A DNA stretch of 64,000 nucleotides from Thecamonas trahens ATCC 50062 (lineage: Eukaryota > Protista > Apusomonadida). Position 1 is the stretch's first letter. Every line of letters starts with the position of its first letter. Under the pieces are notes generated by a model that was not told the DNA's origin, ran no database searches, and was given only the letters and a program-made list of their open reading frames with translations. The stretch is taken from the NCBI RefSeq assembly GCF_000142905.1, contig NW_013657657.1, forward strand, positions 186,001-250,000, in the 5' to 3' direction. Both the position numbers and the translations under genes were made by a program. Below, in pieces: positions 19,192 to 55,690 of the stretch.

Positions 19192-19211
19192 CTTCTTTTT
19201 TTGTTCCTGGC

Positions 19212-19219
19212 GCCACCCT
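19212..19219 (+). promoter_or_regulatory. GCCACCCT element 9 nt downstream of the tRNA oligo-T terminator (also at 19651-19658 +, 19949-19956 -, 54064-54071 -, 55295-55302 +)
   Basis: Same octamer at the same spacing after all five tRNA genes. Function is inferred. Confidence 0.6.
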
Positions 19220-19558
19220 CGCCTGTGCATTGTCTCTGTGCACAGCGTATCAGTTGATGTAGTGCTGCTGTGGGTGATGTGGGTGCTCGTTAGGAGCGGC
19301 CGAGTAGTCGCAGCGGCGGCGTGGCAGCTCGTCCAACATCAAAATCTCCCCCACACAAGGCATTTTTTTCTCCTCCCTTTCCCCTACCGGTCCTGATCCG
19401 TCTCTGACATAGCACCCGCTAGGCAGAGGATAGCATTGGAGCAAGGACGCCACCGATCGCCTCTAGAAGTGAGATGAGGGGTGTGACGAGGTGAGGTTGG
19501 TGCGGGCCAACTAAATTGCGTGCGGCCACTGTCAGTCAACATCGTTCTGAGAACGTGC

Positions 19559-19631
19559 AGCGGCGTGGCGCAGCGGTTAGCGTGTTGGGCCCATAACCCA
19601 AAGGTCGCCCGATCGAGACGGGCCGCCGCTA
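19559..19631 (+). tRNA. Initiator tRNA-Met (CAU), copy 2
   Basis: Identical to copy 1, offset by 440 bp. Confidence 0.95.
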
Positions 19632-19983
19632 CTTCTTTTTTGTTCCTGGCGCCACCCTCGCCTGTGCATTGTCTCTGTGCACAGCGTATCAGTTGATGTA
19701 GTGCTGCTGTGGGTGATGTGGGTGCTCGTTAGGAGCGGCCGAGTAGTCGCAGCGGCGGCGTGGCAGCTCGTCCAACATCGAAATCTCCCCCTCCCTCTGG
19801 TCATTTTTTCGTTCCTCCCTCCCCCCCCCCCCTACCCATCCTCATACCAATCCGACGCAACGCACAAGCGGTGCGTAGCACTCGCCAAAGTGCAATCCTA
19901 GAGAGGAGGCGATCGCTTCCGTGGAAGAGAGGTGGAGAGGGGATGACAAGGGTGGCTTTGGGCGCAAAAAAAAATTAAAGAAG

Positions 19984-20057
19984 CGAACCTGGCCGGGATC
20001 GAACCGACGATCTTCTGGATCAAAACCAAACGCGCTAAACCTCTACGCCACAGGTTC
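19984..20057 (-). tRNA. tRNA with anticodon UUG (nominally Gln), atypical body
   Basis: GAACCTG/CAGGTTC acceptor stem, GCGT/GCGC D-stem, TTTGG-TTTTGAT-CCAGA anticodon arm, GTCGG-TTCGATC-CCGGC T-arm, G73, T9 terminator. Confidence 0.85.
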
Positions 20058-20119
20058 GTTAACATTTACCGAACGAGGGCGAGAATATCAGTATTTTATC
20101 CGTACACCGGATTGGGCGA

Positions 20120-21043
20120 CTACTCGGCAATCGCCGCCACCACCTCTGGCGGGACCACAGCCTCCAGCGCGGCAACAATGGTGGCATGACCGTACTTGAG
20201 TGCCCACTTGAGGGCGTAGTCGTCTTCAGCTCGTGGATCGCAGCGTCCGTCGTCGAGAAGGAGCCGGACAGCGGTTGCGCAGCCGACGTGCGCCGCCTTG
20301 CGCAGGGCCTCCGAGTTGTTGGCGGTCGGATCGACCCGCGGATCAGCAAGAAGCAGGCGAAGCGTGGCGATCTGACCGCACATGCCGGCCCAGCGGACGG
20401 CGCAGTTGTTGTCTGCCGCCGGGTCGACAGCGGGATGGGCGAGGAGAAAGCGGACCACATCGACACGCCCATAGCGGGCTGCCCAGCGGACGGCATAGTT
20501 GTTATACGCACCGGCATCGACGCCCTCTTGAGCTGCCAGAAACTCAACAATGTCCAGATGGCCACACTGTGCCGCCAGCCGGAACGCCAAACAATCGTCG
20601 TCGGTGGGCGAGTAGCCGCTGTGCTTGATGAGCGCGGCAACCGCGAGCGTATGTCCGCGCTTGCACGCCCGCGCCAGCAGCTCATCCTTACTCAGCACCT
20701 CGCTGTCTGCAAAGGCTTTGATGGCTGTTGCCGCCGCCTCGGACCACTCCAGCGAGTCAGCCACCACGTCGCGCTGTGGGACGAGCAGAGCCCACAACGC
20801 CGCAAGCCCGTCGCGAGCCGAACACCACCGCAACGCCAGCTGTGTCGCCCGCCATCGCCGCCTACACGCGCACCACGATGCCCCACATAAAGAGTACGCC
20901 CGGTCGCGCGAGTACCGATCACCGAGCAGCACCGTCGTCAGGCTCTTGTTCACGCACGCCAGGTTGACCACGTCGCGCGGGCTGAGGATGAGCACGTCGT
21001 ATGCAATGCGGTGGACGAGCTCAGCAGGGAGTTTGTCGAGCAT
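20120..21043 (-). CDS. F-box-like plus ankyrin repeat protein
   Basis: MLDKLPAELVHRIAY...LACVNK N-terminus and repeated N.A(V/L)RWA...G...VV..LL..P.VDP ankyrins. Confidence 0.85.
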   Translation of the reverse strand: MLDKLPAELVHRIAYDVLILSPRDVVNLACVNKSLTTVLLGDRYSRDRAYSLCGASWCACRRRWRATQLALRWCSARDGLAALWALLVPQRDVVADSLEWSEAAATAIKAFADSEVLSKDELLARACKRGHTLAVAALIKHSGYSPTDDDCLAFRLAAQCGHLDIVEFLAAQEGVDAGAYNNYAVRWAARYGRVDVVRFLLAHPAVDPAADNNCAVRWAGMCGQIATLRLLLADPRVDPTANNSEALRKAAHVGCATAVRLLLDDGRCDPRAEDDYALKWALKYGHATIVAALEAVVPPEVVAAIAE

Positions 21044-21254
21044 GGTGAGGAAGAGAGCGAGCGAGCGAGCGAGCGAGGTGTGTGTGTATGTGTGTGTGCG
21101 GCGGGGGGGGGGGGGGGGGGTAGGGGGGGTAAGGGGGTTCGAGCTCTGTGCCTGTTTTCTGGTTGTTCGCCGGCCCGGCCCGCACGCCATCCCTCGATCG
21201 TTCTTCGCCACCCGCACCTGCTGATGATCAACTGTGTCTTTGCAGCTTTAGAGT

Positions 21255-24200
21255 CTACAGCGTCGACAAAGTTGATGACGATGACATCGGCATTGCACCC
21301 GAGTACGTGTCGAGATCTTTCGAGTCCGAGCTCGAGCTGGAGCCCGAGACGACTGTCTTGCCTCTTGATGTGACGACGACGAGCTCGGTGGCCGACACGT
21401 TGTCGCCTGACTCGGACCCGGGCTCGGATTGCGAGTAGGAAAGCGGAACGATCGCGCTTGCCGCCCGTCGCATGGTAAAAACGAGCGAGAAGAGCCAGAG
21501 AAAGTAGCCCGCAATGGCAGCGAGCGCCGAGTACTCCAAGAACGACACAAACTGGGAACGCGCGGGCGTGGCCCGGCCGGCCGACTCGACGTCGGCGTCT
21601 GTCCGGTCCCGCGAGAAGATCGCAAACGTAGCCAAGACGACGTAGATGCAGACGGCAACGCCCCCGGCTTCGGCATTGTTGAGCTTCCGCAGAATCAGTG
21701 GCTGCGCATACAGCTGCGCGCCAAGCACAACAATGAGCACCAGGCTCGTCATCACCAGCTGCTCCACTGCGCGCCGCGAGTACACCGCAAGCGCGGTCAT
21801 GCCCACCTTGCGAATCAGAATGGCCCACTCCCAGAACCACACTCGACTGCGGTATTGGCCGGCAAAGAACGACCATCGCGAGTAGCGATCCGCAGGCGCC
21901 GCACGAAGCGCAAGCAGGAGCGCCAGAGGCGCTCCCACAACATACACCACAATGGCCACCACAGCGACGCCTGCATACACTGCGTGGCTCCCCACAAAGC
22001 ACTGGATGTCGAGATCGTCAGCGAGCCAGAGCCCAGACCGGAGCGAGAACGCTCGGCAAGCAAGCATTGACATGGCCGAGCGTGCCACCGCAGGATAGGC
22101 GAGGAAAAACCCTACCGCAGCAATAGTCGCAGCTTGTCGTGCCGCTAGTGCAGGCTGTGTCGGCGACGCGACCAAGCTGCACAGTCCTGAGACAAACACG
22201 ATGGCGATTGGCACAAGCATCGTCGCCACAAACGACTGGTACACGCTCAAGTTGCTCAGGCACCGGATCGGCACAATGTCCATCGAGAGCGCTGAGAACG
22301 TGAGAGCTTGCGCAGCCGTCGTCGCCAGCAGCTTTGACGTCTGCGCACGTAACGCAAACACCACTGCGAGTGTTTGCGCAGTATTGATCGCCGTCTTGAC
22401 AATTTGCGGCACAACAGAAAGCGAGCGCACACGTCGTTGCGTCTTCATCCGCTGCGCTCGCACCACGAGGGTGATAACAACAATTCCCACCGCAATTCCC
22501 ACCGCCACCAGCGCGATCACAATCACCACCGAGACCATGTCTCCCGGACACTCAATGCACTTCTCCCCGCGCGCGCGTACCCGGTACTGCACTTGGAGCA
22601 CGCAAAGTTGTTTGCGTATCCTGGAGCACACTGCGTGTATCCGGCTCCGCCTGGACATGCCTCGGCCGGCTCGCACGCCAGGAACGCACCCATGTCTAAT
22701 TGCGCACTCGCATTGCCATATGGGTACCAGAAGCCAGGCGCAGCAAGGATCCGCGTTGGATCCGAGCAGTCGCCACCAATCGGACACACCCGACACGCCG
22801 CAGCGCCACCAAACGAGAACATACCCCCGGGGCATGTACTGCACAACTCCAGCTGGTGCCTCGCGTCCGACCGAAACGTCCCTGGCTTGCAAGCCAAACA
22901 CTGCTCGCCGTCGAGGTACTCGCCAGCGGTGCAAGCAACCTCACACGTGACCGTGCTGCTAACCACCGTGATCTCATTCTCCTTGCATGGCATAATCGCC
23001 ACCACCATCGGCGTCGCAAGCCTCACACAAGTCATGTCTTCCATCTCCACGCCCACCACGTAGCTCGTAGACAGATCGTCTACAGTCAACGCAAGCACGC
23101 GCGCCTGGCTCAGCTCGCACCTGCCGCCCGCATCACTGCTGCACGTCGCCGTCGCCACGCTCATCTGTTCGGCCGACCCCACTGGAATATAAGCCGGTGC
23201 GAGCGCGAGCGCGGCCGCACCGCCTGCATCTGCGACTGCCACCAGCCGCGCATTGTACGCAAACAGCGACATCGCCCCATACGAATCCACCGCGTGGACA
23301 GCAAGACTGGGAAACGGCGCCTGGCCTGACGAGATCGTGGCCACCATGCCTGTCGTCGTGCCGTCCGTCTTGACAAGAGCCACCGGGTCAGATGCAAGGT
23401 TTGACGGCGTGTTGAGCGTCGTCTGCGCCGCAGCGTCCGCAGGTGAGATGCTCTCAACGTATGTCATGCTGCTCACGTCGCCACTTCCAACTCCATTGCA
23501 CGGCGAGGCAAGAGTCTTGCCACACGCCTGCGAGAGGAGACACTCAAACACGCCACCGCCCGCAATCTCAGCTCGGTTGCCTGACACCGCCACGTCTCCC
23601 GCCGCATACGTCAGCGTGCCCGACGAGACGAGCGCGCCGCCGCCGTACCGGCCCGCAACGTTGCCAGTAATCGCGCATCCAGACTGCAGTAGACATGTCG
23701 TACCCTCTGCAGCAAGGCCTCCGCCATACTCCGCAGTGTTGCCCACAACCTGCGTATTGTCCAGCTGCAGGATGGCCTGATCAGCGACGGCCAGCCCGCC
23801 ACCGCGCATGGCGTGGTTGCCGTCAAAGGTCGAGTTCGAGACAATCACCAATGCAAGGCCAGCAATGCCTGTGCCTCCACCACTCGTGCCAGCCGTGTTG
23901 CCTGCAGCGACTGCTTCACGGATCACTACCCGAGCATCGGCCGAGCTTGGCGAAGCCACACTCAGGCCGCCGCCGACACCGACGGCGATGTTGCCCCGCA
24001 GCTCGAGTCCAAGTAGCTCAATCAGCTCAATCGATGTCGACGTCACCGCTGAAAGGGCCAATCCACCACCGCTCGGTGCCTTGTTGTTCGAAAGAGCAAG
24101 CGATGGGCCAATGAATGTCGACGCCGGCCGTAGCGCGGTGTCGGCAAAGAGCATGCCGCCACCGGCAAGCTGGCTTCCAGACACTGAGTTGCCGTCAGCT

Positions 24201-26584
24201 GCCACCGACGCAACGATAATCAAGCCGATGTCAACCGGAAGAGCTGCAACGGCCACACCACCGCCCCCGCCGATAGCTCGGGACGACGGTGTCATCACCA
24301 AGTTGCCAACCGCAGTGAAGTCTTCGATGACCACGCCTCGACTGCGTGGGTCATCAACGGCCGCGTCATACGATGCACCCACCATCTGGTCGAACATCAC
24401 ACCGAGCCCTCCCCCATACATTCGCGGCGTGCGCAAGAGCGACGATGCAAAGACCGGAAGGTATGGCATGGTCACGCTGCAGAGCTCTATCCGGACTCGC
24501 GAGACCCAGACGTCGGCCGTGTTGACCACGCCAAGCCCGCCACCAACAAGCGTCACATCGTACTCGACATCGGCGTTGCTCGTCGAGGACCGCGGCACTT
24601 GCTCGGTTGCCTCGCTCGTCACAGTGCAGTTGGAAAGCGTTGCATCCTGGACGTGTACCCATACGCCGGTGCCTGCAAAGTCGATGACCGCCACACATCC
24701 ACCCGCCACAATGGAGCCAGCCGCGGGCACCGCAGCTGCGACCCACCCGTTCTTGATTGTCATGTCGGCCAAGACAACCGAGCCCGCGAGCTCGGCATGG
24801 GGCGCCAGTCCTGTGCCGTTGAAGACAAACGCACGACCGGCGCCGGCGCAATCGACAACTGTGGCACCCTGCCCATCGCCCGCAAGCGTGAGCGCAAACG
24901 GAATCGTCACGCCTTGTGGCGGGCAACCGGTCCACGTCCCGGCCGGGAGCCGAATGTGGAAACCGTGGTTGATAGCCGGTAGGTCGTTGACAGCCGGTGC
25001 CACGAGAGCAGCAGCAAGGCACTCCAGATTGAAAGCAGGCGCACCGAGCTCACTGCACCGCACTGGGTCAAGCACGATGCGATCACGAGAGAGGGCAACG
25101 TGGGTATAGCCAAGGTACGTCTCATAATGGACTCGATACATGATAGCAGTTTCAAAGGCCGAGAACAGGCCCGGTGCAAATCGATGTGGAACTCGAGTAC
25201 CAGCACGCAACGCCGTTGCATCCATCGTCATGCTCGGCGGCACCGGCATGTCTGCTAGCGGCGAAGTCCGCAAAACGACGTTCGTCTGCGAATTCCAGTC
25301 AAAGCCGGACACGTCAAGCGAGAACGAGGCAACGTAGTGCTTTGCCACACCAGCGTCGGACAAAAAGGTGACGCCAAAGGCGAGAAAACCATCCTCCACA
25401 AAGACAGCGACGTCATCTTCGTCATTTCCCGTGTCTATCACGCCCTTTCCCACCACAAACTCATCTGTGAGTGGCTCACCGTCGGAGCGGAAAACCCGAG
25501 CAATGACGCCGCTCCCGCCGTCGTCATCGGGATGGCCAGGGTGCACCCATGCGAGGACATAGCCACCTGGATCGAGAGCGACAATGCGAGACGAGCCAAT
25601 CATAGTTATGGCTCCGGCTGGCGACCAATACTGTGCCGGATCGCGCGCCGTGACGACCACGTTGGCGCCGGACACTTGCTCTATGATGAAAAGCACGAGC
25701 GTTTTCGTGCCCTTGTCGTACGCGAACATGGCGTAGTAATTATCGGATGGATCTTGCGACTTGACCGAGACAATTGGAGTCAGCTGGCCCGTCGACGAAT
25801 AGCCACACGAAGTTGTGGCAACTGCGGCTCCGGGCGGCCACACGCCTTCTGGTGGCGTGGCGTAGACCTTGCACTCGACGTTGGGTGTCTGGGTAGTGAG
25901 TGCGAAAAAGTAGCCGTCTTCCATCTCGACCATACCAATCCCGTTCGCCGGAGTGATGTACCACAGCGGATCAGCGACTTCCCACGTTCCCGGCGAGGTC
26001 CGCGTATGGAGGCGGACACCGGTGTGGTTCGGGACGGCGGCGGCGATGGTGATGCTGCTGTTGCCGAGAGTGGCAATGTTGTGATCGCCAATATGACCCA
26101 CAATACTGTATCCGGCCTCTTGATATGAGCCACAATTAAGATACTCTGAATCGAGACCAAACGCTGTGCCTGGGGTGTACGCAGTAAAGACGGCGCGCAA
26201 TTTGGTGTCTCCGTGACTACCGCCCGCAGGTAGCGGGCAGTACCCTTTCTCGTAGGAGTCGGTAATCTGGATCATCACTCCGGCTTTGTTGGTAAAGATC
26301 ACCCGCGGCGCGCTGTGCACATACTTCAGCACCCGAGCATAGGGTGCCCAGTAGGGGACTTGATTGAGCGGCGTTGGCGGCATGAACATCGATACGTATC
26401 CGGGCGCCGACGAAATATTCGCAAACGACGGCCGCGGGCGGGGAAATTTGACCGAGCCCACGACTCCACCCGCCGTGGCGAGAACCGCGTCAATGGTTGC
26501 AAAGGAGCAGGCTCCGGGCTGCGGGAGCACAGCAGCGGTGGCAAGAAGTAAAGTTGCCACAAGCACTAGCCTCTTCGCGAGCAT
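21255..26584 (-). CDS. Giant surface receptor-like protein: signal peptide, unique N-domain, Pmp/beta-helix repeats, Cys-rich (GCC2/GCC3-like) region, TRP(PF06011)-like multi-TM C-terminus (frameshift at about 22565-22568)
   Basis: MLAKRLVLVATLLLA signal; N.A..GGG(L/A) repeats; CxxCxPG repeats. ORF 21255..22934 continues in the -1 frame with about 9 hydrophobic segments, QYRSRVWFWEWAILIRK and a Ser-rich tail. Confidence 0.8.
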
Positions 26585-26632
26585 GTTCAATGAAGGTTTG
26601 CAAACAGAGTTGAATGTCGGTGCTCCCGTGCT

Positions 26633-26660
26633 TGGGCGTGGGCGTGGGCGTGGGCGTGGG
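26633..26660. repeat. (TGGGCG)n hexamer repeat upstream of the receptor-like gene
   Basis: Direct reading. Confidence 0.8.
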
Positions 26661-26868
26661 TGGGCACGGAAACGACGTTTGCCCGGCTGTTCTCTCTGAA
26701 GTCGCACGGAACCTTTTTGCGTCAAGTCGCAGCGCCCAAAAAAATAGTAGCGTGCTGTTTGACGATGACAGCATCTCCAACCAATTCTGGTGGCAACTGC
26801 CAATGCGATCGATGAAGAGGTGTGGCGGGTATGGGCAAACACGGCGTTCAATCGTGACGGCTGCCTGG

Positions 26869-28521
26869 CTACTTGCTCTCGGACGGCCAGAGCGGATCGG
26901 CCTGGGCAAAGCGAACGGCGACACGTGCGGCGACGCGTGCGTTCTGGACAAGGGCATCGTAGGCGATGTTCTCGAGCGTATCGCACGGCGAGTGGTAGCA
27001 CGGGTCGTACGGCGCGTCGGCAAAGCCGCCAAAGATGGTTCGCTGCTCCATGGTCTTGAGCCCCCCGGCACCGGTAAGGAGGCCGCCGGTCGGCTTGTCG
27101 GCGATGAGAAACGGAAGAAAGTCCGAGCCGGCACGCATCGACGAGAGCTCGTAGGTGAGGCCTTCGGCGGCAAACGCGTCGAGGTAAGCTGCCTCGATGG
27201 CCTCGGCACGGCGAAGGACGGTACCTGTGGCGATCGAGTCGTTAGCCTGGTGAACAAAGCGAACATAGTTGGGCGAAGCAAGCATGTCGTAGTTGAGGTA
27301 CAGTTCGATGGCGTCCCAATCCGCTGGCTCGTTGGCCTGCAGCTGGGCCACGTACTGATATGAGCCGATGAGGCCGAGTTCCTCGGCTGCCCACCAGCAG
27401 AACCGGAGCGTGTGCGGCGAGCGGATGGCGGCGGCCTGCTTGCGGTACGCCAGTGCCAGCTGGAGCACAACAGCCGAGCCGGAGCCATCATCGTTGATTC
27501 CGGGACCCTCAGCGACCGAGTCGAGGTGCGCACCCATGACGATGATGGCGCCCGACGGTGTGACGCCGGGAGGCGGCGGCACGTCGGCGCACACGTCATA
27601 AGTGTCGGCGACAACGGTCTCGGTGTTGGTCGCGATTGTGACGCGGGCGGCGGCACCCTTGGCGGCAATCAGCTGGTACACGGTGTCGGTGACGCCGATG
27701 ATAGGCACCGACGCTAGCCATGAACCGGGGTACCACGGCGACGGGCGTGCGCGGCTGCCCGGCAATGAGCGCGAGCCTGGCGACGACGAGAGGAGAACCG
27801 CGGCAGCCCCGGCGGCCTCGGCAGCCATAACTCGGCTCGCATAGTCACACGAGCCGCCGGCCACCGAGTAGGTGACAAAGACGGCGCCCGGCGTTGACGG
27901 ATACGCCGTGGCGTTGCAGGCGTCCGCGGATGGAATAACTACCAACGGCGCGTCGTTGACCGTCTGGGCCCCATTTCCGCCCGAGTACCGGACGCCGGCA
28001 AAGTCGGAGCCGTAGATGAGCTCAATGCCGTCGAGGACCAGGCTCGGAACTGCGATCTGGGTGTAGACCGGAGCCTCGACCGGGAAGGTCCTGATGTCGG
28101 TGTCGGCGAAGCCGCCCTCGGTGAGGCGAAAACGTACAAACTCGGCCGACTCGTTGTACCCATTCAGCACCGATCGGCACGGCACGCCTGCGGCGTTTGG
28201 ATGGTTCACCGCCGCCGCCATCAGCTCGGTCAGATGCGTCCGCATCTCGTCCTCCACCATGGCATCGGCAAGACCAGCGCGAGTGCCTGCCGGCGCCGGA
28301 CCGGCGCCAGTGGGAGCATGATCGTCGTCCTTATCGTGGGCAACGACCACGCCGACGGCTGTCGCAGCCGCCGCCACCACCACCACCACCACCACGGCGA
28401 GGATGACTATCGTGCGCCGGCTCATGCCGCCGCTGCTTCGTCCCCGACCCTGCCCCGCGCCCCGCAGCGGCGTCTCCTCGTCACCCGAGACCAGTGCCAC
28501 ACCCTTGTCAGCTCCACCCAT
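26869..28521 (-). CDS. M28 family PA-domain aminopeptidase (aminopeptidase Y-like), type II membrane anchor
   Basis: GAHLDSVAEGPGINDDGSG, WWAAEELGLIGS, YLNYDMLASPN and YDPCYHSPCD motifs; N-terminal hydrophobic stretch. Confidence 0.92.
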   Translation of the reverse strand: MGGADKGVALVSGDEETPLRGAGQGRGRSSGGMSRRTIVILAVVVVVVVAAAATAVGVVVAHDKDDDHAPTGAGPAPAGTRAGLADAMVEDEMRTHLTELMAAAVNHPNAAGVPCRSVLNGYNESAEFVRFRLTEGGFADTDIRTFPVEAPVYTQIAVPSLVLDGIELIYGSDFAGVRYSGGNGAQTVNDAPLVVIPSADACNATAYPSTPGAVFVTYSVAGGSCDYASRVMAAEAAGAAAVLLSSSPGSRSLPGSRARPSPWYPGSWLASVPIIGVTDTVYQLIAAKGAAARVTIATNTETVVADTYDVCADVPPPPGVTPSGAIIVMGAHLDSVAEGPGINDDGSGSAVVLQLALAYRKQAAAIRSPHTLRFCWWAAEELGLIGSYQYVAQLQANEPADWDAIELYLNYDMLASPNYVRFVHQANDSIATGTVLRRAEAIEAAYLDAFAAEGLTYELSSMRAGSDFLPFLIADKPTGGLLTGAGGLKTMEQRTIFGGFADAPYDPCYHSPCDTLENIAYDALVQNARVAARVAVRFAQADPLWPSESK

Positions 28522-28737
28522 TCTTGCGCAATACACACAAGTGTGCAAAAGTGTGTGTGGTGTGGTGGTGGTAGTGGTGGTGGTGGTGGTGGTGGTGGCG
28601 GCGGGCGGTATGTCACGCGCCTGGCGAACTTAGCAGGTGACTGGGGGGGCGGGGGGGGGGGAGCATGTCACAGATGAGGCTTTGCTCATCCACCACACAC
28701 AGCAACTGTTGCAAACAGACAAGCAGACCGGGCTGGT

Positions 28738-28895
28738 TTACTCGATAAGGCCAAGCGAGGCCTTGAGGGCGCGGATCTTGCAGTTGGCGCGGTCCTTGCG
28801 CTGCGAAGAGTGCAGCTTGAGGCGGCGGTAGTACTTCTGCTTGGCCGGGACGTTCTTCTTGGTCGGCTTGAGGGCCGGGTCGGCGCGGATGGCGG
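28738..28895 (-). CDS. RPL5: 3' end of 60S ribosomal protein L5 (uL18); the remainder lies in the gap
   Basis: Manual translation AIRADPALKPTKKNVPAKQKYYRRLKLHSSQRKDRANCKIRALKASLGLIE* matches the L5 C-terminal pattern (AIRxdP...KlsxxQRKdRv). Confidence 0.75.
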
Positions 28896-28995
28896 NNNNN
28901 NNNNNNNNNNNNNNNNNNNNNNNNNNNNNNNNNNNNNNNNNNNNNNNNNNNNNNNNNNNNNNNNNNNNNNNNNNNNNNNNNNNNNNNNNNNNNNN
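28896..28995. other. Assembly gap (100 N); true size probably several kb
   Basis: It must hold the rest of RPL5 and the 3' part of FG-GAP paralog A. Confidence 0.9.
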
Positions 28996-42229: not shown

Positions 42230-42464
42230 AACAATCAACGGATGACTAGCTACGGAGCTACAGAGTGGGGATGGAGAACACGATGGCTGCAGGGCCGAGG
42301 AGGTAGCTGGCTGGGATCGGGGACCAGACTGGGCATCGGCAGACGCGTGTCAGTAGTGAACGGTGGCAATTGCCCTGCGAGTGGGCGAGTGTCACACGCC
42401 ACTGCCCCACGGCCGACGCCACGTGACTCGCTCCCTGGTCTGGACGGAGGACGGGGTGGCAAGG

Positions 42465-44857: not shown

Positions 44858-45116
44858 TGAGAGGTCTTGCACAGTTACACACAACCCGCGAGTAAATATG
44901 TGCAACTTGTGTTTGTTGGTAGGATAAGAGAGACGGCGAGAGCTTGGGGTTGGTTGTTTGTTTGTTGGTACACTCTGTCGCATGTCGGCTCCGACGACGG
45001 TGTGTCATCGCCGCGGACGGAGGCGGCAACGGCACGGCAAGACACGGCAAGACAGGGCAAGGCAGGGCTTGGGCGCGAAACCGGGAGTTCGACAGTAGCG
45101 GCAGGGAGGGAGGCAT

Positions 45117-47179
45117 CTACTCGTAGTACTCGTACTCCTCCTCGTCGTCATAGTACTCGTACTCGGCAGCAGCGACAGGGGCGGCATCGTTGGACGCCTT
45201 CTTGGTCGAAGTCGGGCTGTCGCCGCGGTTGGTCGAGTCGCCGACGCGGTAGAGCCAGCCCAGAGCAAAGAACGGGATGGAGGCGCCGGCGGCGAGAACG
45301 CCGATGGCCAGGTCGTACTTGTAGGCGCCGTCGCCAAAGAGCAGCTCGTTGTTGTAGATCATCTCCGAGTCAAAGGCATGGAGGATGCCGACAATGGCAG
45401 CGACGAGAACCGGGGCGATAAAGGCAAACGGACGAACGCCAGAGACGAGCTCCATAAAGACAATGGGCATGCCGAGGCCGAGGGACATGATCGGCGTGAG
45501 GGCGACGTTGGAGACGTCGACGAGCCAGTCGTCACCAATGGCAAAGACACCGACGCCGACAACAGTGAAGAAGACCATGGCGAAGCGGGCGTACTTGACG
45601 CGGGCCGGGTCGACGGCAGCCTTGGAGAACGGCGACACGGGCTTGTGCTTGTCACCAAAGATGCCGGCGAGGTCAAAGGCCACAAACTGGCCAGCCGAGA
45701 CCAGGGTAGCGGTGAGGGCGGTGACGCAGAGAATGAGCTGACCGTAGCCGATCATGGCATAGGTCAGGTTGTCAAAAGCAAAGAGCGAGTAGTAGGTCGG
45801 CAGAATACCGCTCCACACCGAGCCGGTGCTCTGCACAACCTGGAGGAAGGCATGGAGGCCGGCGGTCGAGTGAGCAGCAATGACAACGATGGCAGCGACA
45901 AAGGCCGAGCAAAAGGCCCACGCCATCTTGAGCGGCGACGCGAGGAACGCGTGGTCCATGATGACCGGGTCGTGCCACGGGTAGGCAAACAGGCCCTGGA
46001 TACCGGTGAGAATGAGGAGGTCCATGCCGTACAGCTGCGAGTCGGGCGTCTTGATCGAGAGGGACATGTAGTCGACGCACGAGGCCTCGCTGCGGTTGCA
46101 CAGCTCGACATCTTGCAGAGCGAGGACAACCACAAGAACAAACGAGAGCGCAGCGGCGACAAGCATCGACCAGCGGCGGCCGCCCGTCATCGCCGCCACA
46201 AGCGGAATGCCGGCGAGGAGGCCGACGGCAATCCAGTAGTCGGTGTTCCGCTGCGACGAGACATCAGCGAGCGAGACGCCCGTCGTGACGACGGACGCCT
46301 CAGTCTGCGAGTAGGCGCCGGCCGCACCAAACATGGCGGCGCCGGCGGCAATGTTCTGCCAAACGAGCTGGTGGATGCGGTAAGCAAAGATGAGCGCGTA
46401 GAGAACGCAGGCGTAGACGCCGTAGCGGTCGTGGACAGCCTCAAAGATCGATGTGTAGCCGTAGTTGGTGCGGAGGCGGTAGACCACAACGGCGACGACA
46501 AGGAAGCCGACAAACCAGCCGGTGTAGGCCATGGCGCCGATGGCGCCCCAACGCGAGGCCTCGAGGCCCGAGCTGGCCACAATGTACCCGGTGACGGTGC
46601 CCATGACGAGCGAGAGCGTGGTGAGCACGTAGCCCGGCTTGGAGGCGGGCGTGGCACGCGGCGAGGTCGGCACAGCTGCGGCAGCCGGTGCCGGCGCTGC
46701 CTCCTCGTCGTCGTAGTAGTACTGGTACTCGTCAGACTCCTCGTACACGTACTCGTACTGCTGCTCCTGCTCCTCCGAGTAGTACTCGTACTCGCCCTCG
46801 TCCGAGTAGTACTCGTACTCGCCCTCGGGCTCGGTACCGTACACGGCCCGGCCTTGTCGTCAGCACCTGCAGCGCCGACCACGGGCACGGCGTAGCCAAG
46901 GAAGAACGATGCCGGGTAGATGAGGTGCGGGAACGGCGCGAGCGCCAGGAGCACCAGGCCCACAAACAGCATGCCCTGCCACATCAGCTGCTCCTTGACG
47001 TAGTTGGTCTCAGTGTCCGGCAGGAGAAAGTACAGCACAAGCTCGGTGGCGATGATCGCCACCGCCACAAAGTAGGTGCGAACGTTGAGGAACATGGCCT
47101 TGATATGCTCACCGTCACACCCGTACCCAAGGTACCCGAGCGGACGCCCGCAGCAGGACCCATCCTCACCTCCAGCCAT
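45117..47179 (-). CDS. Sodium:solute symporter-like membrane protein with an extra N-terminal TM region and Tyr/Glu-rich segments (frameshift at 46847-46849)
   Basis: GYTSIFEAVHDRYG and QGLFAYPWHDPVIMD motifs, more than 12 hydrophobic segments. ORF 46187..47197 joins ORF 45117..46844 if one G is added. Confidence 0.7.
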
Positions 47180-48314
47180 CTTCAGTCGTGCGAGCAAAAT
47201 GTGAGTGGGGAGTGTCTGCGACGAGTGTCGGCTGGTAGAGAGAGAGAGGGGGGGGGGGAGAAGATGGAGGGAGAAAGGGACTAGGACCCGCTGGGGCAGG
47301 GCCTGGCTGGAGGGGCTGGGCCACCGACCGCGCCCAGCAAAACGGCCACAAAATTAGTGACATTGGCCAACTGCCTCCGCCAACGGTCGTTTGATCAAGA
47401 GCGCCAGCATCCCAGAGTGGGGGGGGGGGGGGGGAGAGAGGGACAACGGCGGGTGTAGGTAGCGGGTGCAGAGGGGAGGTATGGCAGAAGAGAGCTTGCC
47501 ATGTGGATGTATATGTCATGGATGTGGTCTTTGGGTGGTGTCCAGGACTCTGGCTGTGGTGGTGGCGCCAGTGTAGCCTTAATTGGGGTGCACTTCTAGG
47601 TGGCTTCCGGGCGGCTGGAGAGGGAGCGTGGGAGCGTTTCCTCGGCTGGGCTGGAAAAATGTATGGAGAACATGTATAGCCATGGCGATGGGAAGAAGAG
47701 AAGCCCAGAGAAGGAGAGGGTATAGCAAGAGGGAGGGAGTGGGAGGGGGAGATGAAGGGGGCTAGGGTATTGGGTGGCTCTTGGTGGACATGGCTAGAGT
47801 CGCGGGAGTGGGGGCGGGGAAGTGGAAAAGGCTCCCTCGGGGTGGCGTACATTCAACAAGCGCGGGAGAGAGGTTCAACCGTCAATTCGAACACTTTGGT
47901 TTGGACGGTCTCTTGGCTGGTTGCCGCGCCCCCCCCTCCCCATTAATGGCAACGAATCCAATGATTCATATTGATTGAAGAACCTTACATTCATGGAACC
48001 TCCCCCCACACACATCCTTCCTAGCCTTCCAAAGATGTTGGAGACTCTACCGATGATGCCCATAATCCAGGTGGTGGTGGATAGGAGGGGAGATGGGATA
48101 CACGACATACGGCATGTTGTTCTGTTGCTTCTGCCGCCAAGACAAGGTCCGTGTCGGGTAGGGACACCGTGGCGCTGCCAGGCTCGGGTCGTGACAAAGT
48201 TGATGCGTTGCGGCGTCGTTGGCGGTGATTCGGCGCATTCACGCGTCGACGATGTTCTCAACCACCTGTCGTTGCTATAGGCAAGACTTGCACACACACG
48301 CATACACGGCAACG

Positions 48315-50006
48315 ATGGTCAAGGGAGAACGGTCCGTGAGCGGCTACACCAACATGGCAGACAAGGCCGCGGACAAGTACATTCAGGTCCGCAAGATTGG
48401 CGCCGGCGCCTTTGGTGAGGTTCACGTCGTTGTGTTGCGTGACGACGTCGCAGGCGACGGCCGGCCGCGGCTGGTGCGCAAGACGATTCCACTTGCAGGC
48501 GGGTGTGGGAGCGGGCGGCGCGACAACAAGAAGACAGAGGCTGCAGAGGCGGCACGCGAGGTGCGACTTCTCGCCCAGCTCGACCATCCGCACATTGTTC
48601 AATTTGTCGAAGCGGTGCGGAATGCCGAGGCCATGCAGATCGTGATGGAGTACTGCCCGGGCGGGGATCTTGCGGGCGTCATTGCAAAGGCACGCAAGGC
48701 GCGGGCGCCGCAAGTCGGATTTTCTGAGGCGCGCATCATGCGGTGGACGTGGCAGATCGGCTCGGCGCTCGAGTACCTCCACGCCCGGCGCATTCTCCAC
48801 CGCGACCTGAAGGCTCACAACGTGTTTGTCACTGCGAGCGGCGATGTCAAGCTCGGCGACTTTGGCATTGCGCGCCGCCTAGCCTCTCACGACTTGGCAT
48901 CGACCATGATCGGCACGCCACTGTACATGGCGCCCGAGGTGCTGGCCGGCAAGCCGTACGGCTTCAAGTCGGACGTCTGGTCGCTCGGCTGCATCGTCTA
49001 TGAACTTGCTTCGTTCAAGCACATTGTGTCGGCACGGTCGCTGCCCGAGCTGCGCGCCAAGGTCCTCCGCGGCGCCATTCCGGGCATTGGGCCACAGTAC
49101 TCCCGCGAGTTTCGCTGCCTTGTCCGCAGCCTGCTCTCGCGGAGTGTCGCGTCGCGGCCAACTATCGCCAAGGTCATGCAGAGCGACGCAGTCCGCACCT
49201 GGGCACCTGCTCCGCTCCGGCGATCCAAGTCGGAACCGGCCCGAAACATTGTCTCTCGCGTTGCTGCGCCACGGGCTAGACGGCGGGCGAGCCTCAGCGG
49301 CGGGAGCGTGCCCGGCTGTGCGCCGGGTCGCGCGGCTAAAGCCGCAGCCGTAGCCTCCGCGCAGCAGCCTGTTCCGGATCCGCCGCAAAACGCGCGAGAT
49401 GCGGTTCTCGCCCGCAAAGAGGCCCGGCGGCGTGCTGACGAGGCCGCGAGGCTGGCGGATCTGGAGGCTGCCCGCCGCGAGTACTTTGAAGAACGGATCG
49501 ATGCCCGGGCCCGCAAGTGGGGCGCGCAGCCGCGCAGCCGTCGTCGGCGACAGTGGATGCCGCCGCAGCCAACACCGCGCCTTCCGGTCATCGCCGACAC
49601 CCGCGCGCCGTCGCCGGTTGTGGCGTGGGAAGCGGCCGAGCCCGTCGGAGAGCAGCTAGTCCAGCCGGAGCCAATCTCAAGCGACCGGCGGCCGCGATAT
49701 GCACCATCAGCGGCGCCAGACTCGCCGTCGGCGTGGGCTGAGTTCCCGGCTGTCGCCGGACGGCTCCAGTCGCGAGTGCAGCAGCTGCGACATCGACTCG
49801 CGAGCCTCGTGGGCAACAACGCCAGCGTTGTCGCCGAGCGCGCCATGTGCAGCCTGGCGCCTGAAGCGGTCTCGACTCTCGGCCTGCACGCGCTCGACGA
49901 CCCAGGCATTGCTGCCATTGTGACCGGGGCGCGGACGCCGGCAGCGGCCGAGAACGCGCTCGAGGTTGCCCGCCAGCTACGGTTCTTGCAGCTGTATGTG
50001 TCGTGA
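48315..50006 (+). CDS. NIMA-related (NEK) Ser/Thr kinase
   Basis: IGAGAFG, HRDLKAHNVF, KLGDFGIAR, IGTPLYMAPE, KPYGFKSDVWSLGC. Confidence 0.92.
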   Translation: MVKGERSVSGYTNMADKAADKYIQVRKIGAGAFGEVHVVVLRDDVAGDGRPRLVRKTIPLAGGCGSGRRDNKKTEAAEAAREVRLLAQLDHPHIVQFVEAVRNAEAMQIVMEYCPGGDLAGVIAKARKARAPQVGFSEARIMRWTWQIGSALEYLHARRILHRDLKAHNVFVTASGDVKLGDFGIARRLASHDLASTMIGTPLYMAPEVLAGKPYGFKSDVWSLGCIVYELASFKHIVSARSLPELRAKVLRGAIPGIGPQYSREFRCLVRSLLSRSVASRPTIAKVMQSDAVRTWAPAPLRRSKSEPARNIVSRVAAPRARRRASLSGGSVPGCAPGRAAKAAAVASAQQPVPDPPQNARDAVLARKEARRRADEAARLADLEAARREYFEERIDARARKWGAQPRSRRRRQWMPPQPTPRLPVIADTRAPSPVVAWEAAEPVGEQLVQPEPISSDRRPRYAPSAAPDSPSAWAEFPAVAGRLQSRVQQLRHRLASLVGNNASVVAERAMCSLAPEAVSTLGLHALDDPGIAAIVTGARTPAAAENALEVARQLRFLQLYVS

Positions 50007-50024
50007 GACTCGCGAAAGAGAGCA

Positions 50025-52006
50025 TTAGACAGAGCGGAAGCCCATAAAGGCAGCAAAGACAGCGGGTGCAAAGAGGAGTTCGACGTGGTTGTAGCCAAAG
50101 GCGTGTGCGCCGGCCACGAGGTGGTCCGGGTAGCCCGAGCCGACCGCCGACGAGACGGTAACGAGCATGTCGCCGGAGCGGCTCGTCGCCGACCGCGGCT
50201 CGGCGTCGACCAGGGCAGCCTCGGAAGGGACGGCGTCGCGAAAGACCAGACCAGCAGGCGTCGGGATGCCATCGCCGTAGAGCACCAGCTGGCGGACGCC
50301 GTGGATGTCTGCCGCAGCAGCCTGCGCCTTGCGCATAGCTCGGCGCGAGTCCATGGCCCGGTCATAGAGATTCCGCCGAAAGGCAGTGGCGCCGAGCTCG
50401 GACGTTGCCCGCTCGAGCAGTGCCACAATGTCGGCGTCATTAGTGAGCCGAACCGGACGCTGGCCCTCGAGCTGGTAGGCAAGCCAGGGCGCTTGATCGT
50501 CGCCCCAGGTGGCGCCAGGCACCGCAAGCGTCTCGTACAAGATCGGTGCCTTGATGGCCATGTTGCGGACAACCTTCGGTCGAGGAGCGGAATCTGGAAG
50601 TTGTACCCGCTGAGCGCGGCCTGCAACGCCTTGACCGGCGCGCCATTGAACGGCACGCCGATGGCGGTCCAGCTCTCAACAAGCTCTGCAGCGCGGTGTG
50701 GAGAGAAGGCCAGGAAGTACTGGGCTACAAGGCCGCCATACGAGTGGGTGATAAGATCAACCTTGGCTCCGTCGGCTGCTTCGACGGCCATCTCGAGAGA
50801 GCGCTCAAAGGCAGCCTGGGTCGAAGGCGCCCACGGCGCCTGCCGCCAGTCGTACGGCGCGCCAAACAGCGTTTTGCCGCGGGTGTAGCCGACGCGCTCA
50901 AGCCTGGCAATGAACGAGGCGTAGTATGGGACAAGGCCGCCAAGCGGGCCGACTCGACATAGGTGCTCGATAGCAGCGAGGCCGGCATCGCCTTCCTCGG
51001 GGCGGATGGTAAATTCGCCGTCGACCTCGCCGTGTGAGACATACTCGCAGGCGTCCCAGTCGTAATCGCCGCCGAGGTACTTTGTAAAGTGCGAGTTGAA
51101 CTCGGTGAGTGAGAGATAGACATCGCGTGGGACGCCGGGAACCGATGACGACGACGACGACGGTGGGTACGCCATCAACCGCGAGCCGCCGACGCCCGGG
51201 ACAAGGACGACCGGGCGCGGCGGAGGAGCGTTAGCTAGCGTCCCCAGCCACTTTTGCTCGACCGACTCGTCAAAGGTGTGCGAGACAAAGCGTGGGAGCA
51301 TGGCGGCGGCAGCCTTGAACACCTCCAGCTCCTCGGCGTCGAGGCGAGTGGCCCGGGCAAGGTAGCCGTCGATGCGGGCGCGGGCGGTGGCAACGGCCTC
51401 GCGCGCCTCGGCTGGCATGGCCGCTGCCGAGCTGAGCCGATCCAAGAACCGTGAGGTCTCGAGCGCCTCGCTTAGCGCCGCAGGGCGCGGCGCAGCCTTG
51501 TGGACTGCCAGCAGCATGGCCGAGACCCGCGCGCGGGCATCGGCAAGCGCCGGGTTTCCCGCCGCCGCCGACGACGCAGACTGCAGGCCAGCAACCAGCG
51601 AGGCCAGCCGAGACCGCAGCTCAGCACCCACCGCAGCCTTGCCGACGTCGATCCTGTCCGAGAACGAAGCCCAAGCCGCAGCAAGAGCCGATCGCGGTGC
51701 TTCAAGCGCGCCCGGGCGCTCGCCCAAGAGGGTGAAGAGGGTGCCTGGCGCCGCTGGCGTATCCTCCACCTCGAGCGTGTCTGGCAGCGCATCGGCCAGA
51801 AAGTGCGGCACATTGTAGCTTTGCGAGCTTTGTACGTCATCGGCGGAGGAAGGAGGAGCAGGAGAAGGGCGATCGGAGAGAGACGACGGGGGCGAGGTGG
51901 GAAGGGACGGAGCGGACGGGGCGGCGGGGAGCTGCGGCAGCGTCGTGCTCCGCCTCTGTGCAGCTAGTGTGCGGGCACACGCTGCGGCTGTTCGCCACCA
52001 CACCAT
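50025..52006 (-). CDS. LCAT-family acyltransferase/phospholipase A (frameshift at 50578-50579)
   Basis: PVVLVPGVGGSRL, GAPYDWRQ and ITHSYGG nucleophile elbow; the -1 frame supplies GDMLVT..S and HVELL (Asp/His of the triad). Confidence 0.85.
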
Positions 52007-52079
52007 TGCCCTTCCTAGGCGACGGCTGGTGAGGGGTGAGAGGGGGGTGAGGGGTGGGGTGCGAAGAGGGGGGAAGGGT

Positions 52080-52540
52080 NNNNNNNNNNNNNNNNNNNNN
52101 NNNNNNNNNNNNNNNNNNNNNNNNNNNNNNNNNNNNNNNNNNNNNNNNNNNNNNNNNNNNNNNNNNNNNNNNNNNNNNNNNNNNNNNNNNNNNNNNNNNN
52201 NNNNNNNNNNNNNNNNNNNNNNNNNNNNNNNNNNNNNNNNNNNNNNNNNNNNNNNNNNNNNNNNNNNNNNNNNNNNNNNNNNNNNNNNNNNNNNNNNNNN
52301 NNNNNNNNNNNNNNNNNNNNNNNNNNNNNNNNNNNNNNNNNNNNNNNNNNNNNNNNNNNNNNNNNNNNNNNNNNNNNNNNNNNNNNNNNNNNNNNNNNNN
52401 NNNNNNNNNNNNNNNNNNNNNNNNNNNNNNNNNNNNNNNNNNNNNNNNNNNNNNNNNNNNNNNNNNNNNNNNNNNNNNNNNNNNNNNNNNNNNNNNNNNN
52501 NNNNNNNNNNNNNNNNNNNNNNNNNNNNNNNNNNNNNNNN
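52080..52540. other. Assembly gap flanked by poly-G
   Basis: N run. Confidence 0.95.
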
Positions 52541-52838
52541 GGGGGGGGGGGCGTGGCTGGGTGTATTGCACCAGATCTGAGTTTGGGAGAAGACATCAAG
52601 GCCCATAGACCTGCCCCGATATGTGCGCGAGCACTGGTGCGGCTGGTTGGTGCAGGGCTGGGCCATGGTCAGGGCAGGGCAACACCACTCGTTGAGCGGT
52701 CGTCGACGCCAAGTTGAGCGTACACATGCGTCCCCTTGCTTGCAGTCTTGACTTCGATTGCACACTACGTATGTCGGCTGAGATCACGATCGCCGAATAG
52801 CCAGACGAGCTAGTCATGCGGCCGGAGAAGACGAGCGA

Positions 52839-53618
52839 TCAAAAGAACTTGTAGCTGTCGCCATCCAGGACTGGCGGCTGATCCCGGACTGGGGCGCCGT
52901 CCCAGACCAGCATGTCGTTGTGGTCGGTGTATTTGCTGCCACCGCGGCGCTTGCCGCGAGCGCGCGGCTGCGCGTCAGGCCCGGGCACAGGTGCGGTGAC
53001 ATGCCCGTTGAGGATGTCGTAGGTGCGGCGAGAAGGATGGGCCGACGAGTATGCGGCCGAGACCGAGGGTGGTGGGCGTGCAGCCTGGCTGGCGTCGTCG
53101 GTGGTTGCCGGCGGGCGGCGACCAGCGCGGACAGACGGCTCGATTGACGCGTGGTCGCGCGGCTTGGGCTCGCCGGTGATGACGTCAAAGTCGTAATGGG
53201 TATGGTTGGCGGTTGTCCGCTCGGCATCCACTGGTGGATCGAGGAAACAAAGCGAGTTGGGCGGGATGGGCTTGGACGTCTCGTGCGAGACGATGTTGTA
53301 GCCGGATCGATCCTCGATACTCTGCAGGCGGGCATGTTCGTGAGCACGAACCTGCGCTGCATGCCGCGCTGCCTCCTCTGCCCTCGCCGCAGCCTCCTTA
53401 TCTGGTGCCCGATACGACTGCGTCAGCGTGTCAAAGTCGTACTGCTCCTGCAGGATCTGCGCAGACGTCCGCTGGCCGGGCCCTGCCCCTGCCGCACCGA
53501 CTGCAGGGCCCACCACGCGCCCAAAGCTCGCAGTCTCGGCCTCGGCCGTTGGCACCAGCGACGATTCCAGGTTGTCCCCCGTCTCCGAGCTCCCGCGTGC
53601 AGCCAGCCGCCGTCCCAT
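52839..53618 (-). CDS. Hypothetical protein with repeated [YF][DN](I/V)(I/L/V)(S/T/N) motifs
   Basis: ORF with YDFDTLTQ, YNIVSHE, FDVITGE and YDILNG; start uncertain. Confidence 0.55.
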   Translation of the reverse strand: MGRRLAARGSSETGDNLESSLVPTAEAETASFGRVVGPAVGAAGAGPGQRTSAQILQEQYDFDTLTQSYRAPDKEAAARAEEAARHAAQVRAHEHARLQSIEDRSGYNIVSHETSKPIPPNSLCFLDPPVDAERTTANHTHYDFDVITGEPKPRDHASIEPSVRAGRRPPATTDDASQAARPPPSVSAAYSSAHPSRRTYDILNGHVTAPVPGPDAQPRARGKRRGGSKYTDHNDMLVWDGAPVRDQPPVLDGDSYKFF

Positions 53619-54090
53619 GGCCGCACGCTGCGCCACCTCCCGCTCTCGTTGCTGTCAGCCCGTCCCACGTTGGTGTGGTGAGTCTCTAGCAGGGCCGTCA
53701 GCCCCGTGTTTGGCCTGCTCGCACACACCTGCAACCTACGCGAGCCTCCATGTCTGCGCTCTTGTACGTCTGAGTGATGGGATTGAGCCCAGACTCGCGG
53801 TACGGATCCATCGCTCTCTCGCGTCTCACTCCAACAGAGTTCGGTGTCTCGAGGCGCGAGCCCTAAAGCAGTCCGTTGTCTCGCTGCCGCAGAGTCGGCT
53901 CCCTCCAAGCCCAGCTCGATGGGGCATTTTGATCGCAGGGAGATTGGGCACACGACGCAAGGCAAAATGGCAGAGGAGAGGCGGAACAGGGTGTAGGCGG
54001 GATAGCAGGGTGCTTGTGAGCAGTGCGAAATGGCGGTTTGGGGGAAGGAGGTGCCGGGTGAGGAGGGTGGCGTCGTCGACAAAAAAAATG

Positions 54091-54163
54091 AGGTCCCAAC
54101 CGGACTCGAACCGATGTTTTCAGGATCAGAACCTGATGTACTAACCACCTATACTATGGGACC
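54091..54163 (-). tRNA. tRNA-Gln (CUG)
   Basis: GGTCCCA/TGGGACC acceptor stem, TCAGG-TTCTGAT-CCTGA anticodon arm, U73, T8 terminator. Confidence 0.95.
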
Positions 54164-54367
54164 GCTTGAGTGCAAGGGGGCAAGCCAGTATATTTGAAAC
54201 ACTCACTGCGTTCCCAGGTGTGGCAGTCACCCAGCCTGTGGCGCCCTTTGGTCTCAGTAACCGGCTACAATGTAGCTCTGGTTCTTTAGGCTTGTCTCGC
54301 CATCGGACTTGTACCCGATGGGCTTGCTATTTTGAGACAGTCGGCAAGATCGGTATGATCGCCGTGC

Positions 54368-55078
54368 TCAGTGGTCGTGGTAGGCGGCCATAAAGTTGCC
54401 CTTGACTTCAAAGCCGAGCTTGCCGTAAAAGCCGACAACCTTGTCAGCGCAGTCGAGGATGGTCTTGTAACAGCCTACGACGACCGAAAGTGCCTTGAGC
54501 TGCTCGATGATGACACGGCCGAGCGAGAGGCCGCGGGCGGCCTCGACGACGACAATGTCCTCGATGTGGCCGGCGCGGGCGCCCCCGTGGATGAACTTGC
54601 GCTCCACAACGAGGGTGCCCGAGGCGACGACCATGCCAGTCGCATCCTCCTCCACCACCACCACGTAGTACTTGCCGTCGGCTGCCATCTCGTCAAAGAC
54701 CTCGGCCCACGTCGCGGCGTCCATGTCGCCGACATCGGTCAGGTCCGCCAGCACGCCGCAGTGCCCAGCGGCGTAGTCGCTCCGCGCCAGCGGTCGCACA
54801 GTATACCCGTCACCCGGCTGGGCATCGGCGGCCTCGGAGAGCAGGCTCGGATCAAAAAGGTGTGATGCCGCCGCCGATGCCGCTGCCGTCGCCGACGTTG
54901 CCGGCTGCGGAACAGCGCTGCCACTGCTGTACTCCAGCCGAGTCGGGTACGGGCACAAACCGGTAGGACGATAGAAGCCGGCGGCTCCCACGGGAGCACC
55001 GTAGCCATACCCGGGGCTTGGGTGTGCCGAAAATCCCTGGCCATATCCGTACCCGTGTCCGTATCCGTATCCGTTCAT
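54368..55078 (-). CDS. GNA1: Glucosamine-6-phosphate N-acetyltransferase with a Gly/Tyr-rich N-terminal extension
   Basis: VRPLARSDY, LVVERKFIHG...GHIEDIVV, GCYKTILDC...FYGKLGF. Confidence 0.92.
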   Translation of the reverse strand: MNGYGYGHGYGYGQGFSAHPSPGYGYGAPVGAAGFYRPTGLCPYPTRLEYSSGSAVPQPATSATAAASAAASHLFDPSLLSEAADAQPGDGYTVRPLARSDYAAGHCGVLADLTDVGDMDAATWAEVFDEMAADGKYYVVVVEEDATGMVVASGTLVVERKFIHGGARAGHIEDIVVVEAARGLSLGRVIIEQLKALSVVVGCYKTILDCADKVVGFYGKLGFEVKGNFMAAYHDH

Positions 55079-55203
55079 GATACAGTGCAGTGTGACAGGC
55101 CTATCTGTTCTGCGGCCAGCGAACAGAGCCTTGGTTTGTTTGCTGCCCTATGACCAACCCAATGTATGCTATTAATAGCTCAGTTTTCCCCTGTGTTTCC
55201 AAC

Positions 55204-55276
55204 GGTCCCATAGTATAGGTGGTTAGTACATCAGGTTCTGATCCTGAAAACATCGGTTCGAGTCCGGTTGGGACCT
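55204..55276 (+). tRNA. tRNA-Gln (CUG)
   Basis: Identical to 54091-54163 in inverted orientation; T7 terminator. Confidence 0.95.
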
Positions 55277-55690
55277 CATTTTTTTGTCGACGCCGCCACC
55301 CTCCTCCTTGTGGCAAGACTGGCTCTGCTCACAGGACGTGTGTGATAGATAGATAGACTAGGCATTCCCGAGTACGGGATCTGTGGTCCTTGAGCTCCTT
55401 TACCTCCCGAATTCCACATCACAACCGACTCCGCCCCCCCCGTCCGAAGCCGTGTACATCAATCACACCATCCGTATCGGCTGCACACCGCATCGCCTCG
55501 TCAGGTCTGCCAGGTCGGGCTGGCTGAAGTGCACCGGTGCAACGCAGCGCCAAGAGATCGCGGCACGCACAGGCAGCGACAGCAAAGAGCAGACCCACGG
55601 GTTGGTGGATCTATGCATGTTGCATATTCTGCCACAGCTCCACAATGCGCTTGCCTCGCTTCCTGCAAGGCCCAGCACGGTGGTCGTGGG

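Follow-up and report, generated by a model that had tools for sequence, protein, structure and literature searches.

The genome of Thecamonas trahens carries a two-part module behind its RNA polymerase III (Pol III) genes, made up of a T-run and an ACCCTC box that starts 12 nt after the last T. Sequence comparison makes it very probable that this module is a functional cis-element coupled to the Pol III terminator. It was first seen in a window of 64,000 nt (contig NW_013657657.1, positions 186,001 to 250,000), which is C23:186001-250000 of a GC-rich eukaryotic assembly of 28.7 Mb in 131 contigs (C stands for a contig and L for an extracted locus). A first-pass annotation of the window had described five tRNA genes, each with the octamer GCCACCCT 9 nt past the last T of its T-run. 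ARAGORN recovers all five genes, and the octamer lies at that distance behind every one of them: at 19212-19219, 19651-19658 and 55295-55302 on the plus strand, and at 19949-19956 and 54064-54071 on the minus strand. The two tRNA-Met units (19100-19378 and 19540-19820) are 94.7% identical over ~280 nt, from ~19 nt upstream to ~186 nt past the gene, and then diverge; being a recent tandem duplicate, the pair is counted once. The flanks of the two Gln-CUG genes are unrelated past +21. Three assembly gaps are present in the window (28896-28995, 52080-52540 and 63775-63955). None touches an element, and since the elements lie at least 1.5 kb away (the nearest at 1.5 kb), continuity across the gaps is irrelevant to the finding.

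The limits of the conserved unit were set with 20 loci around tRNA genes, which had been scored with the Rfam tRNA model regardless of their flanks and whose 3' flanks were aligned on the end of the T-run. The unit reads T(5-10), then G at +1, C at +2, Y at +3, nine variable positions, and ACCCTC at +13 to +18, after which C/G and then C are frequent. The ACCCT part of the octamer is retained and its GCC (+10 to +12) is variable. The motif must accordingly be given as G-C-Y-N9-ACCCTC, its box beginning at +13, and not as GCCACCCT at +10. In 29 of the 31 unique flanks, exactly 12 nt separate the last T from the first base of WCCCT. The box varies least in its distance from the end of the T-run (standard deviation 0.9 nt), more in that from the T-run start (2.0 nt) and most in that from the tRNA 3' end (3.6 nt). 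Anchoring to the end of the T-run and not to the tRNA, as first proposed, is thus borne out, and it holds where 53 or 114 nt separate the T-run from the tRNA. One such case is tRNA-Leu(CAA) (L097:1358-1521, on C62), in which an unusually long, unstructured 53-nt trailer precedes a T7 and the box. In the other, no T-run intervenes between an elongator tRNA-Met and the 114-nt hairpin RNA behind it, and the T5 and the box come only after the hairpin. Because the box follows even such distant T-runs, the element marks the end of the transcription unit and keeps no fixed distance to the B box. It always points the same way as the Pol III gene. A T-run is visible at every tRNA gene looked at, and the 32 module-carrying genes all have T5-T10 (median 7-8), with a second, back-up T-run within 100 nt in only four of the 32. 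Runs of T5 or longer are avoided within Pol III genes.

The specificity of the module resides in this arrangement. The window contains seven copies of GCCACCCT where 3.2 are expected, and as many as seven arise in 3 of 100 shuffles; the copies at 57155 and 62161 lie in coding-like sequence without a T-run, in agreement with the chance occurrence near 62161 that the first-pass annotation had mentioned. The count of the octamer is unremarkable, and its position is what matters. In 260,749 bases, ACCCTC alone is not enriched (155 seen against ~177 expected from composition). The pattern T4-V-N11-WCCCT has 32 matches in the same bases, all directly 3' of a tRNA gene, and two matches when reversed; the other spacings from 5 to 20 between T-run and WCCCT give 0-3 matches each. 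The terminator context alone is special, and the hexamer itself is not.

Enrichment behind the T-run, with the box at +13, extends to the whole genome. The strict pattern, T5-V-N11-ACCCTC, has 85 matches in 28.7 Mb and its reversed control has none. Genome-wide searches with TTTTGCY-N9-ACCCT gave 86 matches (reversed control, 1), and T4-V-N11-WCCCT placed 10-40 nt behind a B box gave 51 for the GTTC type and six for the GATC type, with no match to either reversed control. At least 77 of the 85 strict matches are at 3' ends of identified Pol III genes: ~51 behind tRNA genes, 21 behind 5S rRNA genes, one behind a 5S-like sequence, one each behind the RNase P RNA and signal recognition particle (SRP) RNA genes, and two behind units of tRNA-Met plus hairpin. 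The other eight are listed in the table. The loose pattern, T4-V-N11-WCCCT, has 172 matches genome-wide against 43 in its reversed control. Its exact matches in L091 and L093 were rejected as chance, having only T4 and lying in coding-like sequence.

The frequency of the module among tRNA genes was assessed in 63 genes from the Rfam list, chosen regardless of the motif. The exact module follows 51 of them, and six have near-variants, with a spacing of 13 or 7, an ATCCT, ACCGT or AGCCT box, or a shifted box. Three more are the upstream members of tight tandem pairs, in which the next tRNA begins 18-27 nt on. The module is missing from two genes (Ala-TGC and the first Leu-CAG), and one flank was unreadable. 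Among the 56 distinct tRNA genes with sequence, the exact module spans 22 anticodon families and 37 distinct spacers, so that the three independent observations originally claimed for the window have become dozens of independent instances.

The organization of some tRNA loci deserves description in its own right. Tight head-to-tail pairs of identical tRNA genes, with spacers of 18-27 nt, are found at L001:7121-7295, L005:2238-2404, L019:410-583 and L019:4942-5113 (Lys, Ile, Val-CAC, Val-AAC). The upstream gene of such a pair is followed by T5-T8, then a C and an A/T-rich stretch without a box, and the full module stands only behind the downstream gene. Five tRNA-Gly(GCC) genes that alternate in orientation form a cluster (L098-L100, C64:78000-80600), and each of the five has the module; ARAGORN calls a length of 96 nt for each, and on that account the genes presumably contain introns. 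Upstream of tRNA genes lie a conserved GCAA-W-G-Y-A-R-TG box at about -50 and an A/T-rich, TATA-like box at about -30. Together they resemble a promoter of the proximal sequence element (PSE)-plus-TATA kind standing ahead of genes that have internal promoters.

Other Pol III genes also carry the module. It stands at a constant offset behind 23 of the 24 5S rRNA genes. A 5S copy on C34 and a truncated 5S-like copy (L086, on C16; 25.6 bits) have spacers quite unlike those of the main 5S family, and L086 has a module of its own. The RNase P RNA gene (C12:254430-254723, plus strand) is followed by a module at 254740-254762. The SRP RNA gene, recognized with the Protozoa_SRP model from L082:1199 to ~1499, ends in T5, a 12-nt spacer and ACCCTC. 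The module marks four Pol III classes: tRNA, 5S, RNase P RNA and SRP RNA. Among the additional genes that the first-pass annotation had named, 5S (23/24) and 7SL, the SRP RNA, thus show the element, and a U6 gene was not located in the genome with the Rfam model and two conserved-core patterns. U4 and U5 were not found in the genome either, and as a result a negative control from small nuclear RNA (snRNA) genes of Pol II is absent. The Metazoa_SRP model gave no match. For RNase MRP, a partial, sub-threshold match alone was obtained (C10:271928-272016, minus strand), without a strict module nearby, and there is no strict module near tRNA-Sec (C41:226744-226829, minus strand). The 24 5S genes are dispersed, and many lie less than ~3 kb from contig ends (for example C57:430, C59:1257, C79:1916, C49:1548, C6:2055 and C22:456756). 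This proximity suggests that they belong to a repeated unit at which the assembly breaks.

Two further loci concern RNAs outside the named families. At L085:1314-1521 (C14:431563-431769), a tRNA-Met is joined to a 114-nt RNA predicted to form a single long hairpin (-50.4 kcal/mol, z = -3.2). In L084, an assembly gap splits a second copy. The hairpin extension matches no Rfam family, and tRNA and hairpin together are probably a dicistronic Pol III unit. The other locus, L081:1501-1760 (C2:395422-395681, minus strand), holds ~240 nt for which a stable fold is predicted (z = -2.9), with T4 at the end. Its spacer and box agree with those behind the SRP RNA gene in 20 of 21 positions, and nothing else is similar; it has no match to an Rfam family. 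This sequence is a candidate for an unknown Pol III RNA.

Table. Positions of the tRNA genes, terminator modules and related sites (window coordinates unless a contig or locus is given)
Feature	Position	Strand	Details
tRNA-Met(CAT), copy 1 of tandem duplicate	19119..19192	+	ARAGORN
Terminator module, Met copy 1	19196..19220	+	T7 19196-19202, 12-nt spacer 19203-19214, ACCCTC 19215-19220
tRNA-Met(CAT), copy 2	19559..19632	+	ARAGORN
Terminator module, Met copy 2	19636..19659	+	T6 19636-19641, spacer 19642-19653, box 19654-19659
tRNA-Gln(TTG)	19983..20057	-	ARAGORN
Terminator module, Gln-TTG	19948..19974	-	T9 19974-19966, spacer 19965-19954, ACCCTT 19953-19948
tRNA-Gln(CTG), minus-strand copy	54090..54163	-	ARAGORN
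Terminator module, minus-strand Gln-CTG	54063..54088	-	T8 54088-54081, spacer 54080-54069, ACCCTC 54068-54063
tRNA-Gln(CTG), plus-strand copy	55204..55277	+	ARAGORN
Terminator module, plus-strand Gln-CTG	55279..55303	+	T7 55279-55285, spacer 55286-55297, ACCCTC 55298-55303
tRNA upstream regions with conserved boxes	19050-19118, 19490-19558, 20058-20110, 54164-54210, 55130-55203; also L001-L020
Other eight strict matches	C6:614216, C8:536429, C10:43106, C13:502673, C28:284799, C61:109907, C63:125265, C73:69294

The module could in principle be a by-product of copied flanks, gene conversion or mutational bias, with no function at all. Some copies are indeed recent duplicates (the Met pair and most 5S flanks), and spacers are 35-80% identical within families. 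However, the box and its position are all that 22 anticodon families, 37 spacers and four RNA classes have in common, and the reversed controls give 0 or 1 match. Paralogs provide a further view. In 20 old pairs with randomised far flanks, identity remains high between the T-run and +21 and is ~25% from +22, and the upstream flanks are only 25-65% identical. Old paralogs thus retain the box where the sequence beyond it has become random. The counts exclude non-function, and this explanation is effectively refuted. Because identity falls to ~25% at +22, the constrained tRNA gene unit ends with the box.

The place of the box at the outer edge of the conserved unit would suit a chromatin barrier, in which a general factor bound to the box fixes the downstream nucleosome, keeps the terminator accessible or insulates Pol II neighbours, with no direct effect on Pol III release. 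The genome is gene-dense, and Pol III recycling in yeast is under the control of the downstream nucleosome, which encroaches on the terminator (PMC13475603). Spacing to the single base from the last T is, however, more than a barrier of this kind would require, and the constant orientation of the box with the Pol III gene also speaks against it. The hexamer is also not enriched in other intergenic DNA, unlike the sites of general regulatory factors. We consider a barrier unlikely.

The box may instead contact the promoter machinery. It would then be an extra site for TFIIIC (through its terminator-proximal subunits), TFIIIB or a SNAPc-like Myb protein, and recycling would be facilitated by a loop between terminator and promoter. 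The vertebrate PSE has an ACCNT core with which ACCCT agrees, which we take as a lead only. The conserved upstream boxes are also present at these tRNA genes, and terminator-dependent recycling is established in yeast (PMC13475603). The distance between the B box and the ACCCTC box is nevertheless unfixed, the latter lying 19-33 nt from the tRNA end and up to ~130 nt from it. Nor is the element a copy of the B box (GGTTCGANNCC), as the first reading of the window had already stated: the box is ACCCTC and the spacer is variable. The box is shared, moreover, by the 5S, RNase P RNA and SRP RNA genes, in which the internal promoters are not the same as in tRNA genes. A contact of this type is quite improbable.

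Presence of the box at every Pol III class, whatever the promoter type, and its exact spacing would be accommodated if Pol III itself read the signal. Subunits of the enzyme would sense the G/C step after the T-run together with the ACCCTC duplex at the front end of the cleft, and both would modulate pausing or release, with no separate factor. The low information content of the box suits such context-dependent reading, and the downstream untranscribed duplex is apparently sensed by Pol III (PMC9278858). This explanation requires a lineage-specific change in a conserved enzyme. We know of no eukaryotic polymerase that reads a specific hexamer 13-18 bp ahead of its active site, and we regard direct reading as quite improbable. 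A chromatin barrier, sensing by Pol III and a recycling contact all keep the element tied to the Pol III terminator.

The explanation that we prefer, by analogy with Pol I terminators and with a confidence that falls somewhat short of even, is a roadblock or pausing mechanism at the Pol III terminator. The ACCCTC box would be the downstream half of a two-part terminator closing nearly every Pol III unit, and it would be bound by a sequence-specific factor, maybe Myb-like, or by a Pol III-associated domain. With its site beginning 12-13 bp beyond the T-run, such a factor would be encountered by the leading edge of Pol III once the active site had reached the last T residues. The block would hold the polymerase on the weak rU:dA hybrid, thereby enforcing release, and would stop read-through into closely packed neighbours; possibly it would also return Pol III for re-initiation. 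In a compact genome in which T-runs are long and back-up T-runs are rare, such a positioned block could substitute for fail-safe systems such as back-up terminators and Sen1. T-tracts are not always sufficient for Pol III, very long tracts release poorly, and the enzyme appears to sense downstream untranscribed duplex (PMC9278858). Read-through is cleaned up by back-up terminators and Sen1 (PMC9278858).

Several observations weigh against a roadblock. The T-run may terminate transcription alone, and a roadblock would then be unnecessary. Avoidance of T5 or longer inside Pol III genes implies that the T-run is probably sufficient, and the T-runs behind the genes are long too. In the tight tRNA pairs, the box is missing behind the T5-T8 of the upstream members. 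Spacing exact to the base is hardly required by a roadblock. The information content of the box is only ~7-9 bits against the GC-rich background, and ~19,000 ACCCTC sites are expected genome-wide by our estimate; an autonomous binder would therefore need extra context. The box also differs from the motifs of Reb1 and TTF-I, and no strict module is present on C44, which carries the large subunit (LSU) rRNA gene (C44:6027-9688, minus strand), so that no link to a Pol I terminator factor emerges. In a stronger form of the roadblock, Pol III termination would be factor-dependent: the T-run would be insufficient, and a box-bound protein would have to stop the polymerase as in Pol I. We doubt this form. 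If it were true, the T5-T8 without a box in tight pairs would be read through to give dicistronic precursors, and the textbook rule of autonomous Pol III termination at oligo(dT) would be broken.

The distribution of the element among other organisms was approached through metagenome contigs, which were scanned with a pattern of B box, T-run, GC, N10 and ACCCTC. The scan seeded 60 contigs, many of them bacterial-looking, and the module is missing from all 11 other tRNA genes on them. This absence weakly suggests that the element is not a general eukaryotic feature, and the lineage specificity supposed at the outset gains a little from it. A literature search found no description of such a two-part terminator element, nor of Pol III signals in Thecamonas trahens. 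What is new about this Pol III terminator is its downstream box, which is conserved and exactly spaced; the T-run part was already known.

Pol III is taught as terminating unaided on a bare T-run, and here an exactly spaced second element is found at four RNA classes. The element allows accessory, and possibly factor-assisted, termination or recycling of Pol III to be tested directly in a lineage near the root of animals plus fungi. The 23-nt pattern, with no reversed-control match in 28.7 Mb, is also a practical flag for Pol III units. It already points to the tRNA-Met-plus-hairpin dicistron, the ~240-nt structured RNA and the eight unassigned matches.

The module shares with the canonical Pol III oligo(dT) terminator a sense-strand T-run right behind the gene, here T5-T10, and the avoidance of T5 or longer inside genes. 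The G/C after the T-run recalls the GC-rich context of Xenopus 5S terminators. It differs in that an ACCCTC box at an invariant position (+13 to +18) accompanies ~80-95% of terminators here, as judged from conservation only. In the canonical model the signal is the T-tract only, aided by RNA structure and Sen1 (PMC9278858).

Other DNA elements near short RNA genes are comparable in location. The Dictyostelium ex-B box and the downstream B box of yeast SNR6 are extragenic and lie downstream of Pol III genes; they are copies of the B box, bind TFIIIC and stand at variable or long distances. In contrast, the ACCCTC box does not resemble a B box, is fixed to the T-run, and occurs also at 5S, RNase P RNA and SRP RNA genes. 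In Pol II roadblocks (Reb1 and other general factors) and in the snRNA 3' box, a DNA element past the 3' end of a short RNA gene sets the end of transcription. The snRNA 3' box acts on Pol II through RNA processing, and the Reb1-type roadblock is also a Pol II system. Unlike the snRNA 3' box, the ACCCTC box comes after the T-run and probably escapes transcription.

The terminator of Pol I provides the remaining comparison. Pol I pauses in a T-rich element 15 bp upstream of a Reb1/Nsi1/TTF-I site, with an RNA hairpin just upstream (PMC12366685). The polymerase and the motif are different here, and the factor is only putative. The Pol I element is also found at the end of the rRNA gene, whereas the strict module is absent beside the assembled LSU rRNA gene. 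The architecture is nonetheless alike, with a T-rich element, a fixed short gap and an oriented site that is bound by protein in Pol I and putatively so here. The gap is 15 bp in Pol I and 12 bp in the module, within the 11-15 bp range (29 of 31 flanks, always in the sense orientation), and the counterpart of the Pol I hairpin would be the tRNA acceptor stem or another terminal helix ahead of the T-run.

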